A stretch of DNA of 64,000 nucleotides. Origin: Magallana gigas (Eukaryota). This document shows, piece by piece, positions 49,301 through 60,682 of this stretch; positions within the stretch are counted from its first letter, which is position 1; each line of letters starts with the position of its first letter. The notes beneath the pieces are model-generated. The model did not search any database, had not been told where the DNA came from, and was given only the letters and a program-made list of their open reading frames with translations. The DNA is taken from assembly GCF_963853765.1 (NCBI RefSeq), contig NC_088858.1, positions 51,460,001 through 51,524,000 of the forward strand, written 5' to 3'. A program made the position numbers and the translations under genes.

Positions 49301-51161
49301 ACAGTATTCACACAGGTCTTAGGGAGCATTAGGCCGCTGATTATTGTTATGATTAATTTATCTATAAATGGAAAACATTATGATCAAGATGGGTAATTCT
49401 TAATAACGTACAAGGTTGTACTGTAACACGCCGGATCAAGGGACCCCATTACGTAACACAGGGCGGACCGGTCCCCCACGCACCTGCTGGCCCTCTGTTT
49501 GTTACTGTCTACACATTGTGCAATATCAAGGTTCAAGTTCCCCTACACACGTCACACCAACAATTGCTAGTGTTATATGCAATGATATTAAATGATTTTT
49601 CATTTAAATCTCTGTTATCGAAGTGTCTACAGCAAATGATTACATAATTTTGACAGTGAATTTATGTTTCTCTTTCCCTAGATCTTGGGCCAGTTGCAAT
49701 AAAAACGTATTGAAATAAGATAAAGTTAGAGCGTGCATCAACACAAAATAATATTGAAGTCAATTTAAGACGAAATTCATTTCTAGCCACGGTTACCCTG
49801 TGAAATAATGCACAATTCTATGGCCCTTATACACGTGTATATTGAATTTTTTTATCACTTGAACTTCTGAAACTTAAATTCAGTGTAATATTCGGCCAAT
49901 TAAAAAAACCCATTAATGTATATGTAAATTTAAGCTTCCCATTTATATCTGCCAACAGGGCAATTTGCGGTTTTATAGATGTACCGGTACTCTGGGAGGG
50001 TAGTCGCAGAGTAAAATATTGTCCTTTACAAAAATTTAGATTACTAGTATTGAGAAATTTCTACATGACAACTGACAATATACAAATTTTGATTCTCAAT
50101 AATCTAAATTTTTGTAAAGGACAATATATTGAAACAAACAACGTGCAAAACGCATGCGCTAGAAATATATCAAAAATGGTATAAAATGATACGTTTTGCC
50201 AAATGGTTGTCACCCGTTTTTAGATACATTTATAATAAGTAAATTGATCTTCATTGTATGCAACTTTTAGGTATGTATATTGTACATGTAAGAAGTAAAA
50301 TAGATGGTGTTCATTGTGTTTGGCTGTTATATTCAAGGATCAAGCCACTTACTGAAGACAGGGCCTTCCATTATACAGACACTGTACTAGGGTCTTGTTA
50401 GCCTGATGGCCGAACTTCCACTGCTCCTCCCTATTTGGTCTCACGGCCTGTTCTAAAATCCGGAAGCCATATCGGAGACTTGCCCTGTAGACACTGTACC
50501 AATCGTTTTGTGACGTCATTGAGGAATAAGGCTCGAAAGAAAAATCTATCTCTGACATCAGTTTGTCATATTTTTCTTTGTCTAGGACATTTCTGAGAAA
50601 AGTTTGAAATGAGGTGGATTTTATTGCGTCGGTTCCATTTTTTGTAAGAGATGGTGACAGCATGGAAGTAGTTGTCATGGGAACAAGGAGATCACGGAAT
50701 CTGTCGCCAGCGGACGCCACCACAGAGAAACGCAGTTTGTTCTTATTGCACACAGTTATAACCGGTACCTCGGATATCCTGGCACCAACTTGCTCAGTTC
50801 GAAAGCTAGAGGACTGTAGATAGTAAACTGAAAAGTTCAGGTACACAAGGAACACGAATCCACTGAAAGCAACACAAGAAATAATTATCCATATGGATGT
50901 TTCCAACACGTGAGTAGTTGTTCCCGCAATCCCAAGTCCATGAATGTCCACAGCGGGAAGCCACAGCCTGGCCCGGTCAAAATTTGAGGTGGCGTCCGAT
51001 TTGGTCAGCTCATCATTTGTGACGTCACGAAGCGTCCTCCATTTTTTCATGTGCCTGTTCTTTTCATAATTCCCGTTCCTGACACTCTCTGACTCTGAGA
51101 TGGAGGTGAAATATCTATCGCACCTGTCCTTCCACGCGCTGTACGAGTCCTCGTCCCCCAT
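44474..51161 (-). CDS. DEG/ENaC (amiloride-sensitive sodium channel family) subunit, about 726 aa, 10 exons
   Basis: Exons 51161-50353, 48959-48886, 47452-47289, 47157-47101, 47004-46896, 46762-46690, 46546-46430, 46276-46201, 46117-45987, 45044-44474 are phase-consistent (2181 nt). HG motif (DIHGL), TM1, PVITVCNKN, HGRCF, LRLNIEPDEY, CSCPLPC, WPS, TM2 LLANIGG...IGMS...LE. Confidence 0.9.
45143..45984 (+). mobile_element. Helentron-associated (HINE-type) element with about 161-bp units, in the last intron of the ENaC gene
   Basis: Subterminal IR ATGCCCCCC / GGGGGGCAT; GTCTGTCGGTCAGTCGGTCGGTCC tract. TTATTTG(C/T)AGTTTCC at about 45381, 45542, 45704, 45864; ends CATCTCTTGTT. Confidence 0.85.
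46328..46388. repeat. (TA)n microsatellite
   Basis: Pure TA run in an ENaC intron. Confidence 0.97.
48225..48750. repeat. 40-bp minisatellite, about 13 diverged units
   Basis: Consensus AACTTGAATTATTACTAACTGCTATGTTATAGCGGTCACA, in ENaC intron 2. Confidence 0.9.
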
Positions 51162-52682
51162 TATCCTACTTGTCCCCTGTCACACAAACTGACCGTGCCA
51201 CATTCAGGTATAAATCAAATTCTTGCGATGAAATCAGAATGGTTAAACTTTCTGCGTCCAGTCAACCGCTCTTCCAAAAAATGTTTTGGTATGCTTTTTG
51301 ATACCTGTCGGGTGCGCGCCGCTTTAAATGTCCACCTCTAAGTCTGGCTCTATATATCCTATTGTTATAATGTTCAATCCAAAAACGATCTGCTTTTATA
51401 TCAGTCCCGAAAGAGAGAGTGATAATTAAAATGTGAACAAAAAAATGAAATAATGTTTAGTCCAAAAGAGAAATGATAAAGCTTTTCATTTTGCTGCTCC
51501 ATTGTCTGTGTCGTTCTTTGGTCGGTTCCTCGTAATGAGAAAAAACCAGTAAAAGTTTATCAACCAGGAGTTTAAATTTCTGTATGTATAAACGGCAATC
51601 GCACCTCAATTGTTCACATTTCTCCTTCTGTAATATGAACAATGGAAAAACTCATGCATTTTTATAAATATCACAAAACAAGCGCGGTTACGTGCATATG
51701 AAACGATTACAAAATCAAAATATAAGTAGCGTAGGCACTAGGATAGTTTTGCAATCGATATTCCAGAGAGATGGGTACCGTTCTCGTTATAGCGGCGACT
51801 AAGAGTGAACGGTTGAATTATTGATGATAAGAGAGTTAAACCAGCGGATGGACCGTAAAATGACCATCAGAGCCCTCCTAAACATCGCCAAGTACAAAAT
51901 TCTCCTCGTATCAATAAGCAACTCCACACAACTCAGGTGTACAGAAGAGATTGGTTAATGTTAAACACGGTTTCTCGTTAAACCAAAAGTTGAGTTTTCG
52001 GATATATCAAAAATGATACGTGATTTGAACGTTGGGATGTTCTCAATGATAATCAGATATTAAGGAAATTAACTTAACTTTAATACTTGATGTTGTCTTC
52101 AAATTAAATACTTAATGACTCTAATGCTGTTTATATCATAAAGCTTTTTGCGTTTTAGTAAGGGAGAAAAATGTGTAAAGCGATAAAAACGCATTGGTTT
52201 GTTGGTAATTCTAACATAAGAATACAAATGAACTTAGTTCGGTTTATGTTAACTTGATATACCCCATGTATAAATTGAATTGAAAATAAATAAACATCAC
52301 AAACACATAAACAAGTCCTGTCTGCATGGTTTTTATGCATGTTGATTCTCTAAATTACTGAGAAAAACCTGTTTCTTCAAAATGAGAGCAAGTTATTCAA
52401 AATTTGCAAATCAGTCCAATGCTCTTTAATTGAAATGTATTTGTAAGAATATTGACGAAATTGCTTTGAAAATATCAGTTAAACAGTAAATATTATCTAC
52501 ACAAAAGACTCGGAAATGGCACATCAGAGCAAAACGTAACAAATCTGAGTAAAAAGTGCTACAAATTCGAACACAGAGGCAAGAAAAGCAAAACGCAAAA
52601 AATGTTCAGATCGATTGCAGCAAAAAATAAATATTTTGATTGTATCGCATATATTAAGTAAAAAGTAGTCCCTGCACCGTCA

Positions 52683-54749
52683 TCATAGGTACACAAAATA
52701 TTCATACTCCCACATATCCTCGGAGTACTCCGACTGGATACAGTCGCTCAGGTTGTATTCCGTGAGTCGGCTGTCCAGGAAATGCAGCATCTTACTGACC
52801 ATATCATCGCTACTGTCCGCCAACAAATTCTCCTGTCTCCCCGGAAACAAGAACTTCACGTGTTTCAAAAAGTCAGACTCGTCCGCCAGATGTGGGTTAT
52901 TGATGTAGAAGTTGGGGAGGCGGCCATTTTGGAGAGCTCTCTTCAGAAAGTGAATGGCGTCGGAGACCCGGGCCGAGATTTGGTCCATGGTCCACTGCTC
53001 GGCTCTACTCTCCACCAGCATATAACTGACTACAGTCTCTATCATGTAGGAGGACACCTCACCTCGGCTCAGTAAAGTCTTTCTGGACTGCGGTGCAAAC
53101 AGAAACTTCAGAATCTGGATGACTGTCTTATGACAGCCAAGGACTCCGCTATAAGCACATTTCTGGTCCATCTTGCTAAAAAAGAAATGCTCTAACTCCC
53201 CAAATGACATGCTCCAGTATAAGTCATGTGATGTGGCTTGCAGTGGCTGAGTGGCGTAGCGATCTCGAGGCGCCACCTTGCGTTTAACGTCAACGTTTGA
53301 CCACGTGGGAACGGCGTACAGGTTGACTGGGTCTATCCACTTGTTAGTGCTCAGCAGCAGGGAGGGGATGAGTTGGACTCTGATGTCGGAGCAATGGAAA
53401 CCTACCACATTTCTAGTGTCCAGCGACAAGTAAAGCCCCGGAGAGGAGGCTCTTTGTATTCTGAACGGCAAACGGTCAATCATAGGCCTGCCCTCTTTGT
53501 ACAGTTTCTGAAGAGCAATTTCGGTCAATTCACAGGCGGCGTTTAGAAATTCTTGTGGAGAAATGCATTTCTTGTCTTTGTACGTTTTTAGGAGTTTGGA
53601 TGGAACCTCATGGTTTTCGTTGTCAATGGCAATTATTACAAGTTTTCCCGGCGGAATGTCAGAGTTGGTTCTATTGTCGATGGCAGACGACAGCACAATG
53701 TCTGAGCACTGGAACAGGAAAGAAACGTCACTTTGGTTCGCGGTGCCAACTTTCGTTCCTTTCCGCACACTTCCGGTGGGAGAATACGAGACGTACCTAA
53801 GACCATGGTAAGGACTCATTGTTTTAAGAACTTTGTCCAAAAGGTGCACGGTGTAGTTCACAATGAAATTTGACAGGGTCAACTGTTCAAAGTTTACGGT
53901 ACAGGTACTAGTGCAAAATTCATATAACCTTTTGTTGTCTCCTTGTAGAGATTGTGCGAGAGACTCGGGTTGGAGCGTGTGTGTACAGACATTGTTGTAG
54001 ATTACATGTTGCTGGAACTCTCTCAGAGCAAAAGTTTCAGTGGAATCTTCACCCGTGTCACGCGAACTTCGTAAAGGGGAACTACTACGTCTCCCCGTAG
54101 TCCTTAGGACTGGGCGCCGGGGCAGACGGACAGATGACGTCACAGTGCTGTGCAGTGGTCCGTCAGACTGACCGGAGTTATTCTCTATCAGCAGTTTGTC
54201 AAGTTCCTGGAACAGGCAGTCAACTGTCCTCTTCAGGAACGAAGGAAGATCACAACCGGTGACGAGGGTGTTATGACTGGGGTGGTACTGGACGTTGTAC
54301 AGTGGAACGTTACCGGGCTGTGTCTCAGATGTCTGAGCCGTGCCGACGATGACAGTTTGATCCTCTGTAGATGGTTCATCGTGTGTATCGGCTATCTCAG
54401 TTTTTACAACTTTCCTATCACAGAAATCCAATATTTTGGCTATTATCAACGGTGTCACTAGTGTTGTCAGTACAACCAACACGAAACAGAGAGCCAGTCC
54501 ACTATGAATATCAATTTGGCCATCATAGTCACTGATCGAAGTACAGCCGCTGGGTGGTGTGTCACTGTTCTGAGTCTCCGAATACAGAACGTTTTTCCTT
54601 ACCCATGACGAGAATTCAGCTCCTAGTTTGCTCCATTCGGACACAATGGGCGGACTTCTGTCATTAGGTTCCTCGATGTAGCATTCTGATAAATCAAGCT
54701 TTACGTTCAGTCTGTAAAATCGAGTGTCATTGAATACATTCACGGCCAT
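52683..54749 (-). CDS. Membrane-anchored Mab-21/cGAS-like (cGLR-family) nucleotidyltransferase-fold protein, 688 aa, probably catalytically degenerate
   Basis: Single 2067-nt ORF; hydrophobic helix GLALCFVLVVLTTLVTPLIIAKIL. Mab-21 motifs TGSVRKGTKV...NQSDV, RVQLIP, WSMSFGELE, ILKFL, SSYMIET, LPNFY. An in-frame TGA 18 nt upstream supports the ATG at 54749. Confidence 0.85.
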   Translation of the reverse strand: MAVNVFNDTRFYRLNVKLDLSECYIEEPNDRSPPIVSEWSKLGAEFSSWVRKNVLYSETQNSDTPPSGCTSISDYDGQIDIHSGLALCFVLVVLTTLVTPLIIAKILDFCDRKVVKTEIADTHDEPSTEDQTVIVGTAQTSETQPGNVPLYNVQYHPSHNTLVTGCDLPSFLKRTVDCLFQELDKLLIENNSGQSDGPLHSTVTSSVRLPRRPVLRTTGRRSSSPLRSSRDTGEDSTETFALREFQQHVIYNNVCTHTLQPESLAQSLQGDNKRLYEFCTSTCTVNFEQLTLSNFIVNYTVHLLDKVLKTMSPYHGLRYVSYSPTGSVRKGTKVGTANQSDVSFLFQCSDIVLSSAIDNRTNSDIPPGKLVIIAIDNENHEVPSKLLKTYKDKKCISPQEFLNAACELTEIALQKLYKEGRPMIDRLPFRIQRASSPGLYLSLDTRNVVGFHCSDIRVQLIPSLLLSTNKWIDPVNLYAVPTWSNVDVKRKVAPRDRYATQPLQATSHDLYWSMSFGELEHFFFSKMDQKCAYSGVLGCHKTVIQILKFLFAPQSRKTLLSRGEVSSYMIETVVSYMLVESRAEQWTMDQISARVSDAIHFLKRALQNGRLPNFYINNPHLADESDFLKHVKFLFPGRQENLLADSSDDMVSKMLHFLDSRLTEYNLSDCIQSEYSEDMWEYEYFVYL

Positions 54750-54949
54750 TTTTAGCGCACGGTTTCATTGTTCTGACAAATAGAAAGTACAACTTACAAA
54801 ATGAAAGTTACGTTATGAAGAGGAGTTGTCTTCCTTAGAACCGACGTTGTGATATTTTTGTATTTGTACCGAAAAACTAAAAGAAAAAAAAGACACATAC
54901 ACAAAATAAAAAAAAAAAACACCCAGACGGAACGACCTGATACTCAGGT

Positions 54950-54987
54950 CGTCGATCCGATTTCTTTTCTTTTAGACGCACCTGAAA

Positions 54988-55018
<31 letters not shown>

Positions 55019-55236
55019 CGGATTAGGATTTTCATGATTTGGGGAAAAAATGTTATGGCCGGAAAGATTTTTTGTTTTGGAAGTATAGGTTTACTCCCCC
55101 CCCCCCCCCCCCCCCCCCGGATTAGGATTTTCATTATTTTGATTTTGGGAATTAGGTTTTTTTCTCTCAATATTTCTGAGGATCAGTCTAGCTCCCCCCC
55201 CCCCCCCCCCACTTTCAATTTGCTTCCGACGCCAGT
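54950..55236. mobile_element. G/C-homopolymer-rich MITE fragment(s)
   Basis: Poly-C tracts, duplicated GGATTAGGATTTTCAT, and end CACTTTCAATTTGCTTCCGACGCCAGTG. Confidence 0.45.
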
Positions 55237-55605
55237 GCATAAGGTAATATTAGGAGAGTTTTATAGTTTTTTAGATGAAAACTATAGTTGACGGATCGTT
55301 AATTAAAGTTAACGGATCGTAAACTATAGTTGGCGGTTCGTAAACTATAGTTGCCTAATTTATCAAATGTGAATTTGGCGTGCCATAGATTTTCAAACAT
55401 GTATGCGGGGTATGCTTCAAGATAAGAATACCGCAAATGTCATACAGAAGTTACACTACTCAGGAATCTGGTTCAGTATTACATGTACTATGTAATTGTT
55501 GTTTTACACTTCTAGATGATGGCGTTATATAAATTAAGTTCTATATGGTTTACAGATGTGAAATATAGATTACTAGAACTATACAAAATGTAGATTTGCC
55601 CTTAA

Positions 55606-56780
55606 GCTACGGTTAAAGCAATATGAGCTGTATTTTTTTTTAGAATTTTATTTTGCTGCAAAAACCTGCTAGTATAATATGGTGGCATATCTCTGCCCCT
55701 TGTGTGCAAGTTATTTTTCTATTAATTATGTGGACATGCAAGATAAATATGTTGACATGCAAGATAGTTATGTCAACATGCAACATAACTATGTTGACAT
55801 GCAAGAAAACTGCAATCAAATAAGAGTTATAAAAAATCTCAAATATCGCCAACATGTGACATTCAAGATGCTAGATACGCTACCTATTGATGTCAACATG
55901 CAACTTATTTATGTTAACATGCAACTTCTTTATGTCGAAATGCAACTTATTTATGTTGACATGCAACTAAGTTATGTCAACATGCAACTTCTTTATGTCG
56001 ACATGCAACTTATTTATGTCGACATGCAACCTAGTTATGTTAACATGCGACTAAGTTATGTTGAGATACAACTTATAAGTTGCATGTCAACATATTTATC
56101 TCGCATGTTAACATAACTAAGTTGCATGTCAACATATTCATCTTGCATGTCAACATAAGTAAGTTGCATGTTGACATAAATAAGTTGCATGTTGACATAA
56201 ATAAGTTGCATGTAGACATAAATAAGTTGCATGTTAACATAAATGAGTTGCATGTTGACATAAAAAGGTAGCATCTAGCATCTTGGATGTCACAAGTGGG
56301 CGATATTTGAGAATTTTTGAGATTTTGTATAATTTTTATCTGATTGCAATTTTCTTGCATGTCAACATAGTTATGTTGCATGTTGACACAATTATCTTGC
56401 ATGTCAACATATTTATCTTGCATGTCGACATATTTGATGGAAAAATAACTTGCACACAAGGGGCAGAGATATGCCACCATAGTATAATAAGTCTGCTTAT
56501 GATTTAAACTTTTATGATAAATAAGATTTGAAAAAAATCATTAATTTTTGTCAAAGGAAATATTTCTCTTCTAAGGAATATATATCAAATCAATTTTTGT
56601 ACAGGATGACAATAATTCAATTTTGCTCCAAATAAGGCTTCTTATCGGCTTTTTTTTCAAAAATATGGCTAACAGAAATTTAAAAACCATGATGTTTTTG
56701 TCATTTCAGTAGAAAAGAACATTTAAGTAAAAAAAAAAATTCAACATGAAAAATGCAGCTCATATTGCTTCAACAATCGA
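55606..56780. mobile_element. TTAA-flanked TIR element (Kolobok-like) hosting a foldback insertion
   Basis: AAGCAATATGAGCTG(T/C)ATTTT is inverted at the two ends; TTAA at 55602-05 and 56781-84. Confidence 0.65.
55679..56480. mobile_element. Foldback element with long inverted arms and 21-bp internal repeats
   Basis: Ends ATGGTGGCATATCTCTGCCCCTTGTGTGCAAG and its reverse complement; 8-bp target duplication AGTATAAT (55671-78, 56481-88). Internal ATGTCAACATGCAACTTATTT-type repeats occur in both orientations. Confidence 0.88.
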
Positions 56781-59279: not shown

Positions 59280-60682
59280 ATGTACTGGCTCAACGTTGTA
59301 AACGGTCAGCTGTGCCCCGACCGCTTCACCAGGCAGTACGGTAAGTGACGGCTATCCCGCCCATAGGTACCGAGTCCCACCCCCGGGGCCCATCAAAGTA
59401 CATATGTTGACGGTCTCAGGTCATTCACGTCTAGGGGTTTCTTTGTGTGTTTTTTAAGGACATAAAACAAAGTACAGTGAACTCTTGTTTTTGAATCACG
59501 TAATCCCTTGTTTAGAGTTATTGGAAATCTAACAAAATTTTAAGTTTAACTTCGGGGTAGAGAGACTTATGAATAGATCTATATTTTCTCGGACAGGAAA
59601 ATATTAAAAGACTGGTGTTTTAAAAGTGAAATTTTATATATAAAAAAGATCATGCACGTCATGTAATTTGAGTCGCTTCCATTCTGTTTTAAGTTTTAGT
59701 GTTTCACATTGCTAAGGTGTGCACTGGCTGACAATATCTGCTGACGTCGAGTACAAATATACTGATGAATCATAACTCGATCTAGTTGGTTCCACCGTCA
59801 TGGTTATTTAAAGTACCGGTAACTTACAAATACTTATATTTTTCTATATTTTTAGCAAGAAGACAAGACCCCCATTCCCTCATCTTTGAAGCCATACTCT
59901 ATGGAAACAAGAGCGAGGTCCAACAGTTGATATCCGCCGGGGTGGACAAAAATGTCGTCACACATCGACACGTGCGCTGGGAGGGCGCGAGTGCGCTTGG
60001 CGCAGCAGCTTACGAGGGTCAAATGGAAATAGTTAGATATCTAGTAGACATCGGAACATCAGTGAATTTCTGTGACCCCTGCCAAAAACGGACGCCGCTA
60101 CACTGGGCGTGTCTTGGCAACCAGTATCAGGCGGCCACTTATCTCGTCACGCGCGGTGCTGACGTCAATCAAAGAGACTTGGAGCAGACGACACCACTTC
60201 TTCGCGCTGTTTTAGGAAAGAACGTTGATTTGGTGAGATATTTGATTGAGAATGGCGCCGATGTCCGTCACACTGACGTATTGGGCTGTTCTATCCTCCA
60301 CTACGCCTGCATTCACGCCGACAACACCCTGATCAGCGCCGCCATCAAAGCAGGCTGCATCTCCAACAATATAGCCATGATTGGAAAAGGCACGCCGCTA
60401 CAGACACTAGCTACACAAAACGACACGGGAAGTGTGCGTCTGTTGCTGGAGGCAGGGTATGACCTCCAGAATGACCGTCCCTGGGTGAAGTCACTCCCTC
60501 CCTCGTGTTCAAACCCGTCATTGCAACGTGTGGTAAAATTCAACAGTCAACCAATGAGTTTAAAAATACTATGCAGAAAAACTATAAGGAAAGCAATGGG
60601 AGGAGTAAAACTGGAACAGAGATTGAACAAAATTCCATGTCCAAACTTAATTCATCATTACCTTACGCTTGATGGTCTTTGA
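59280..60682 (+). CDS. Ankyrin repeat and SOCS box protein (ASB-like), 295 aa, 2 exons
   Basis: Exon 59280-59340 (MYWLNVVNGQLCPDRFTRQY, donor GTAAGT) joins 59856-60682 in phase. Multiple ankyrin repeats (TPLHWAC, TPLLRA) and a C-terminal SOCS box SLKILCRKTIRKAM...IPCPNLIHHYL. Confidence 0.9.

Follow-up and report, generated by a model that had tools for sequence, protein, structure and literature searches.

Proteins that carry the nucleotidyltransferase (NTase) fold of the cGAS/Mab-21 superfamily are not all enzymes. The two-metal NTase reaction needs the acidic residues of the active site, as is established for the superfamily (PMC2794190; PMC3926961), and those membrane-anchored proteins with a dead Mab-21 fold that have been characterised are receptors or binding proteins. 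MiD49 and MiD51 have an N-terminal membrane anchor and a cytosolic dead NTase fold in which a single Asp is kept; MiD51 binds no catalytic metal and yet takes up ADP or GDP at about 3 uM, and it recruits Drp1 through a surface loop, a function for which nucleotide binding is dispensable (PMC3926961). ITPRIP, held by a single transmembrane (TM) anchor with its Mab-21 fold in the cytosol, is found at the outer nuclear membrane, where it binds IP3 receptors (PMC6550788). Bivalves, for their part, have very large repertoires of cGAS-like receptors (cGLRs) and of STING, described in surveys that keep only proteins with complete active sites (PMC9980059). Here we describe a 688-amino-acid (aa) open reading frame (ORF) of the oyster Magallana gigas, intronless and on the minus strand at 52683-54749 of a 64,000-nucleotide (nt) stretch of contig NC_088858.1 (positions 51,460,001 to 51,524,000; hereafter the window, in whose numbering positions are given), with coordinates confirmed by translation. 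A sequence-only reading of the window had taken this ORF for a transmembrane cGAS-like protein with a rewired active site. The analysis presented below points instead to a degenerate site, and to a new membrane-anchored pseudo-NTase family of the cGAS/Mab-21 superfamily with its own ectodomain, linker and C-terminal motif.

A membrane-anchored Mab-21/cGAS fold with a degenerate active site

The helical, HhH/H2TH-like half of the domain is recognised by the Pfam model Mab-21_C (PF20266) at 43.8 bits against a gathering cutoff of 24.1 (E 3e-11), and at 45.3 bits when the domain is given alone, while the NTase core model PF03281 finds no match at E <= 0.01 even with the domain by itself. A profile search of the PDB returned cGAS at 1.3e-15 and MiD51 chains only at about 1e-3. 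A full-length AlphaFold model made from 14 sequences reached a predicted local distance difference test score (pLDDT) of 51.7, and it was replaced by a model of residues 160-688 based on an alignment of 37 sequences, with a pLDDT of 80.8 and a predicted template modelling score of 0.82. In VIA this model superimposes on MiD51 (4nxt_B), the best structural match, with Z 26.7 and a root mean square deviation of 3.0 A over 322 aligned residues, and on cGAS (7uyq_A) with Z 26.2, the two superpositions covering about 310-320 residues. Among predicted proteins Foldseek retrieved Nematostella cGAS (E 1.5e-17), ITPRIP, ITPRIPL1 and ITPRIPL2 (3e-16 to 8e-15) and MiD51 (7e-14 to 5e-13). On the strength of Z values of about 26 to MiD51 and cGAS and of these Foldseek matches, the modelled domain is a complete, bilobal NTase core with the helical lobe of the superfamily, as the sequence-only reading had supposed.

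The active site within this fold is another matter. When the family is aligned by hhalign to a set of cGLR-like proteins with an intact catalytic triad (probability 99.9%, E 8.7e-36), Q339 falls on the invariant Glu of the first acidic position, D341 on the invariant Asp of the second and Q459 on the invariant third Asp; the HMMER alignment to cGAS agrees on the first two. The GS motif is kept, position 326 being Gly in 35 of the 37 members compared (Asp and Arg once each) and position 327 Ser in 36 (Leu in one), and the second carboxylate is kept as well, with Asp in 34 members and Glu in three. By contrast with the triad-intact set, an acidic residue is never found at position 339 (Q20 R6 H3 S2 K2, with V, A, C and T once each) nor at position 459 (Q13 R7 N6 K4 H3 S2, with C and V once each). 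The assignment of an intact GS, a QSD in place of the acidic pair and an RVQLIP at the third site thus holds, and the acidic triad is not intact on alignment. What does not hold is the description of the site as rewired: since 339 and 459 vary and no specific residue takes the place of the lost carboxylates, the site is better called degenerate. That the first and third carboxylates are gone from every member points to one early loss. Because both are absent, synthesis of cyclic dinucleotides by the canonical two-metal route should be impossible, and judged by its residues the domain cannot be active by that mechanism.

The best-conserved motif in the sequence of the protein lies outside the fold, at the very C-terminus, which reads YSEDMWEYEYFVYL and which had been singled out beforehand as an acidic-aromatic tail. 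Across the 37 members S676, W680, E681, E683 and F685 are invariant, M679 is found in 35 and Y682 in 36. The last nine residues have a pLDDT of about 54, for which reason the tail is probably not packed on the fold. By pattern alone, compared by eye, it fits a YxxPhi motif (Y682-F685) and a WxxxF/Y motif (W680-Y/F684). Two other known motifs were considered and rejected, namely the canonical LC3-interacting region ([WFY]xx[LIV]), which is not conserved across the family, and the FFAT motif (two phenylalanines in an acidic tract), to which the tail is a poor match, core positions 4 and 5 being Val and Phe. Searched with a degenerate DNA pattern that encodes M-W-E-Y-E-[FY]-F, the genome yields one further site, C3:7476180. 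The ORF there is 17 codons long, lies in AT-rich DNA and has a stop two codons ahead of it; the site is taken as chance, since base composition alone would give about 0.05 such matches.

Between membrane and fold lie a helix and a linker. The linker had been proposed as disordered and Ser/Arg-rich, and this is borne out for residues 191-234, which have a pLDDT below 50 and hold the Ser/Arg-rich stretch; a confidently modelled, conserved helix at 168-193 precedes it. Conservation here was taken over 14 orthologs, in which F171, L172, F180, E182, D184 and K185 of the helix and R211, R212, R216, S223, S224 and P225 of the linker are invariant. The linker is probably a phospho-regulated segment.

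The membrane anchor is equally regular. In all 35 complete members there is one hydrophobic segment only, 40-130 residues from the N-terminus, and a hydrophobic N-terminal signal is absent from each of them. The 15 residues that follow the TM helix hold 2-7 Lys and Arg, against 0-3 before it, and the excess on the C-terminal side is seen in 35 of 35. From this concentration of positive charge we infer an N-out/C-in (type III) topology, in which the Mab-21 fold is predicted to be cytosolic. The segment ahead of the helix, about 83 aa here, in keeping with the roughly 85 aa and single TM helix first read from the sequence, has an N-x-S/T sequon in 32 of the 35 members, 29 of which place it among the first 20 residues, and exactly two Cys in 23; among the 14 orthologs N7, T9 and C23 reach a conservation of at least 90%, and C69 is invariant. 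The ectodomain or lumenal domain is thus predicted to be small and is probably glycosylated and disulfide-bonded.

Taken together, we think it likely, at a probability of about 0.6, that the protein acts as a membrane-anchored pseudoenzyme scaffold or adaptor, by analogy with MiD49/51 and ITPRIP. The dead NTase fold would serve as a platform for protein interactions at the membrane, the exposed W-E-Y-E-[FY]-F tail would be a short linear motif, a putative docking site for a partner in the cytosol, and the Ser/Arg-rich linker would be a regulatory segment, probably phosphorylated. This role is likely because the characterised membrane-anchored dead Mab-21 proteins are of the binding rather than the catalytic kind, and it fits the distribution of invariant elements, which are the free C-terminal peptide and the helix after the membrane, not the lining of the pocket. 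Several points weigh against a scaffold. The role is argued by analogy. The N-out/C-in arrangement is a prediction, and for type III proteins, which have no signal peptide, an N-terminal segment of about 83-115 aa is a long one. The retention of GS and D341 in a mildly basic domain (median isoelectric point 8.3) makes ligand binding possible, and instead of recruiting a partner the tail could lie against its own domain.

Family range and relationship to ITPRIP, MiD49/51 and cGLRs

An exhaustive phmmer search of 1.84 billion representative sequences gave 50 matches at E <= 1e-3, 32 of them at E <= 1e-30; nearly all of the latter measure 680-780 aa, with alignments that run to the very last residues. 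The family comprises about 45 clusters. Its named members are all molluscs: among bivalves oysters, scallops, Pinctada, Sinanodonta and Dreissena, among gastropods Patella, Lottia, Haliotis and Pomacea, and among chitons Liolophura. Judged from its named members, then, the family has so far been seen only in molluscs, and its range may be wider. No description of it was found in the literature searched under ITPRIP, Mab-21, cGLR, transmembrane and oyster, in line with the earlier suggestion of an undescribed, membrane-tethered dead cGAS/Mab-21-fold protein, and automatic annotation calls its members either uncharacterized or ITPRIP, the name that the scallop ortholog bears. The cGLR surveys omit the family because they select intact active sites.

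That automatic name raises the question of whether the family is the molluscan ortholog or co-ortholog of vertebrate ITPRIP/ITPRIPL (also DANGER) and does the same work, for instance the regulation of IP3-receptor calcium release from a membrane anchor. By single-sequence search vertebrate ITPRIP is the nearest named family: beyond the family itself and the proteins P0043 and P0044, the named phmmer matches looked up are all vertebrate ITPRIP at 33.9-41.4 bits, one scallop protein excepted. P0043 is probably a divergent or truncated family member. Clusters ranked by language-model features put ITPRIP at the top with a score of 0.90, which is a lead only. The architecture is also common to both: the N-terminus is lumenal, a single TM helix follows, and the Mab-21 fold lies in the cytosol (predicted for the family, known for ITPRIP; PMC6550788). 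Both have the dead-site pattern of GS with the middle Asp as sole carboxylate, which in ITPRIP reads x-C-D with an invariant Asn at the third position, and in both the fold closes with a [LIV]-x-x-E-Y-[ST] motif.

Profile comparisons draw the family in another direction. The significant HMMER matches to ITPRIP are confined to the Mab-21_C half, and identity in structural alignments is 13-16%. The family profile scores ITPRIP at 47-62 bits, a scallop cGLR at 56-60 bits and pig cGAS at 60 bits, and its best match outside the family is P0044 (580 aa, intact triad, ENA ERZ25072724), with 145 bits to the profile and 78 bits in phmmer. By hhalign the strongest profile match is that to the triad-intact cGLR-like set (score 275, E 8.7e-36, both lobes covered), whereas ITPRIP reaches 140 (E 2.6e-17), half of that score, and is itself about as far from the triad-intact set (133, E 6e-17). 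The profiles thus suggest a family closer to triad-intact cGLR-like proteins than to ITPRIP. There are differences of build as well: family members are without the ITPRIP-type signal peptide and lumenal coiled coil, having instead non-hydrophobic N-termini with the sequon and Cys pair; their linker after the TM helix is much longer; and ITPRIP is without the W-E-Y-E-F-F tail.

A maximum-likelihood tree of 32 sequences under LG+C20, from which ITPRIPL1/2, TMEM102, MIEF, MB21D2 and cGAS were left out, gives the family and ITPRIP as two clades with support of 100/100 apiece and joins the family to P0044, weakly, at 60/23; in an approximately unbiased (AU) test a clade of family plus ITPRIP is not rejected (delta lnL 1.58, p 0.243). 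Since the deep nodes are weak and the AU test does not discriminate, orthology to ITPRIP is neither shown nor rejected, and we regard it as a possible but unlikely account of the family. Clear orthology to a characterised MIEF, ITPRIP or TMEM102 gene, which the sequence-only reading had named as a ground for refuting it, is not seen with the sequences compared, and TMEM102, of which no sequence was compared, is not among the 27 matches whose names were looked up of the 50 at E <= 1e-3.

MiD49/51 share the anchored, single-Asp design described above, and in VIA MiD51 is the closest fold. The Pfam model MID51-like_C (PF21297), however, finds no match at E <= 1, and the N-terminal extra-membrane segment is longer in the molluscan family, where it carries a sequon and Cys pair that point to the secretory pathway and not to the mitochondrial outer membrane.

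With cGAS and the cGLRs (among them oyster Cv-cGLR1, P0044, P0054, P0079 and a cluster on contig C7) the family shares the fold. It differs from cGLRs in being membrane-anchored and single-copy rather than expanded, and it falls outside the definition of a cGLR by a complete active site (PMC9980059) because the first and third acids are missing in every member: of the three signatures only GS is present, the [E/D]-h-[E/D] pair and the third Asp/Glu being absent. Two sets of these cGLR-like relatives were noted in passing. P0054 (433 aa, intact triad; L003 1117-2418, GCA_022702835.1), which scores 90 bits to the family profile and is the second-closest relative outside the family, ends in a hydrophobic C-terminal TM helix and may be a tail-anchored, possibly active cGLR. 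On contig C7 of the oyster assembly (G000 C7:16036616-16066445; L005-L007) lies a tandem cluster of at least three cGLR-like ORFs. Two, of 445 and 433 aa and almost the same in sequence, are intact and keep the whole GS/E-F-D/D triad; another is broken by an internal TAA stop.

Nucleotide binding, receptor function and residual catalysis

A dead pocket may still bind a ligand, and the protein might, in the manner of MiD51, bind a nucleotide or cyclic dinucleotide and so serve the cGLR-STING network at the membrane as a sensor or a sink. The conservation of GS and D341, the precedent of MiD51 itself with its single Asp, and the size of the bivalve cGLR and STING repertoires (PMC9980059) would be consistent with such a role. 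Against it, the residues that replace the lost carboxylates are variable and include Arg and Lys as well as Cys and Val, which argues that the pocket lining is not uniformly constrained, and the family has no fixed residue where hcGAS has R376. The gene is single-copy, and its named members come from gastropods and a chiton as well as from bivalves; it is thus no part of the bivalve cGLR expansion and does not track it. Binding is at most a candidate property, and in MiD51 the recruitment of Drp1 proceeds without it (PMC3926961). The isoelectric point of the domain, with a range of 6.1-9.3 about its median, was considered as a guide to nucleic-acid binding and decides neither for nor against. 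All in all a nucleotide sensor seems to us rather improbable.

Harder still to credit is a transmembrane pseudo-cGLR receptor branch in molluscs, in which either the dead pocket would sense a nucleotide or the glycosylated ectodomain an outside cue, and the tail would recruit a cytosolic effector. The tail, with its YxxPhi and WxxxF/Y patterns, recalls in this reading the acidic-aromatic PEYFP loop by which MiD51 recruits Drp1. Nucleotide sensing and an ITPRIP-type function both overlap with the proposed scaffold role.

An NTase that is still active through non-canonical catalytic residues is very hard to reconcile with the data: the fold is complete and GS and one Asp are kept, but 37 of 37 members lack two of the three metal ligands and have chemically heterogeneous replacements, PF03281 is unmatched even at E 0.01, and MiD51, likewise with one Asp, binds no catalytic metal (PMC3926961).

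Conservation, transcription and copy number

The ORF is a real, functional, expressed and conserved single-copy gene. Full-length oyster orthologs of 688-694 aa, Saccostrea included, have identities of 98, 89, 86, 68, 65, 63 and 61%; scallop orthologs have 34-41%, and the Pinctada pearl oyster protein P0074 has 42% over the domain. Against two congeners with unsaturated dS, the Nei-Gojobori method gives dN/dS ratios of 0.22 (dS 0.25) and 0.13 (dS 0.54) for the whole gene and of 0.15 and 0.07 for the fold domain. The gene is under purifying selection. In the 564-Mb assembly it occurs once, the next matches to the family profile reaching only 49 bits and being the triad-intact cGLR genes of the contig C7 cluster.

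Public contigs and RNA reads cover it from end to end. Logan contig L001 runs without a gap over 54845-52105 at 98.8% identity to the window, and since it is collinear there is no intron within this interval. Two RNA-library contigs span 52281-54791 (depth 31.5) and 52446-54766 (depth 25.1), and in the same two runs the 3' flank bins at 51651-52254 have zero reads; on the 5' side RNA depth is below 3 from 54822, and repeat-driven depth starts at 55124. Raw poly(A) reads over the coding sequence in two runs have the first mate mostly on the plus strand, the usual signature of minus-strand RNA; their coverage is low because about one read in 100 was sampled. The sequence-only reading had allowed that the ORF might prove unexpressed or neutrally evolving, and it is neither. 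A chance ORF or decaying pseudogene, for which we found no supporting point, can be dismissed given the full-length orthologs in many molluscs, a dN/dS far below 1 and transcription.

A short upstream ORF (uORF) overlaps the start of the gene, its stop TGA falling on codons 7-8 of the main ORF. It stands at the same place in the window, in L001 and in the related oyster sequences L009, L010 and L011; at the Saccostrea locus (L012) this uORF is not found, and a different upstream ATG occurs there at -11. The uORF lies inside L001 and inside the RNA-library contig X2, which reach 54845 and 54791, and the contig X8 ends at 54766, just within it. It may control translation of the main ORF.

Features of the gene and its surroundings

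The features of the gene are collected in Table 1.

Table 1. Coordinates, in window numbering, of the 688-aa gene and of its parts
Feature	Position	Strand	Basis or remark
Unspliced mRNA, approximate extent	52105..54845	-	5' untranslated region ~50-100 nt; 3' untranslated region ~240-580 nt
Complete intronless coding sequence, 688 codons + stop	52683..54749	-	ORF list; same start/end residues in 688-694-aa orthologs; Logan contig L001 collinear
uORF, 13 codons, out of frame	54727..54768	-	starts 19 nt ahead of main ATG; overlaps main ORF
N-terminal segment, ~83 aa, predicted lumenal/extracellular	54501..54749	-	sequon N7-D-T9 (54723-54731); conserved C23 + C69
Single TM helix, residues ~84-110 (predicted)	54420..54500	-	sole 19-residue window with Kyte-Doolittle >1.6; maximum 2.74
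Conserved helix ahead of fold, predicted cytosolic, residues 168-193	54171..54248	-	core FLKRTVDCLFQELDKLL; AlphaFold helix, pLDDT 82-91
Disordered Ser/Arg-rich linker, residues 194-236	54042..54170	-	pLDDT <50; six invariant residues (R211, R212, R216, S223, S224, P225)
Mab-21/cGAS-fold domain, residues 237-670, predicted catalytically dead	52740..54041	-	Pfam, PDB profile search, Foldseek, VIA
G326-S327, NTase GS motif, kept	53769..53774	-	aligned to cGAS GS motif; family counts
Q339-S340-D341 replacing [E/D]-h-[E/D]; second carboxylate alone kept	53727..53735	-	hhalign; HMMER to cGAS
Q459 replacing third catalytic Asp (hcGAS D319 equivalent)	53373..53375	-	hhalign; within DIRVQLIPS
Aromatic-acidic tail, residues 675-688	52686..52727	-	motif [YF]-S-x-[DE]-M-W-E-Y-E-[FY]-F-h-[FY]-x-COOH

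Directly upstream of the 5' end of the gene, 54877-55300 contains three poly-G tracts (about 17, 23 and 32 G) in repeated units of about 70-90 nt. RNA reads there have loose ends of poly-C and strand-switch joints that link 54901-54903 with 55192-55193, and their depth is very high at 55124-55274. The stretch looks like a dispersed repeat or hairpin element and not like part of the transcript of the 688-aa gene. Farther on, an inverted repeat at 55679-56480 gives two mirrored ORF-like reads on opposite strands with the same first 45 or so residues (MVAYLCPLCASYFSI...), followed by tandem YVDMQ-type units; RNA depth there is in the hundreds, with a peak of about 700 at 55577-55727, which suits a repeat family.

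Two neighbouring ORFs could be assigned to known families. The 270-aa ORF at 50349-51161 on the minus strand matches the N-terminal part of the amiloride-sensitive sodium channel family (Pfam ASC, 4.4e-11) and probably represents exon 1 of a DEG/ENaC gene that lies just downstream on the same strand; a DEG/ENaC neighbour also follows the ortholog in Saccostrea echinata (L012), so that synteny is kept. On the plus strand, 59786-60682 holds a single-exon, ASB-like ORF of 298 aa with ankyrin repeats and a C-terminal SOCS box.

Implications

The molluscan family would stand as a fourth lineage of membrane-anchored dead cGAS-fold proteins, beside MiD49/51, ITPRIP/ITPRIPL and TMEM102, and it is well suited to the question of whether proteins of this kind have a single origin or several. 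If the receptor-like pseudo-cGLR described above were to prove real, the protein would act as a regulatory node, either within the greatly expanded cGLR-STING network of these animals or next to it. The practical consequence is modest, consisting in improved annotation of molluscan genomes and in a defined motif to test. A single copy, strong constraint over at least three mollusc classes and a C-terminal peptide that, in place of the pocket, is the most invariant part of the protein together suggest a conserved cellular role.

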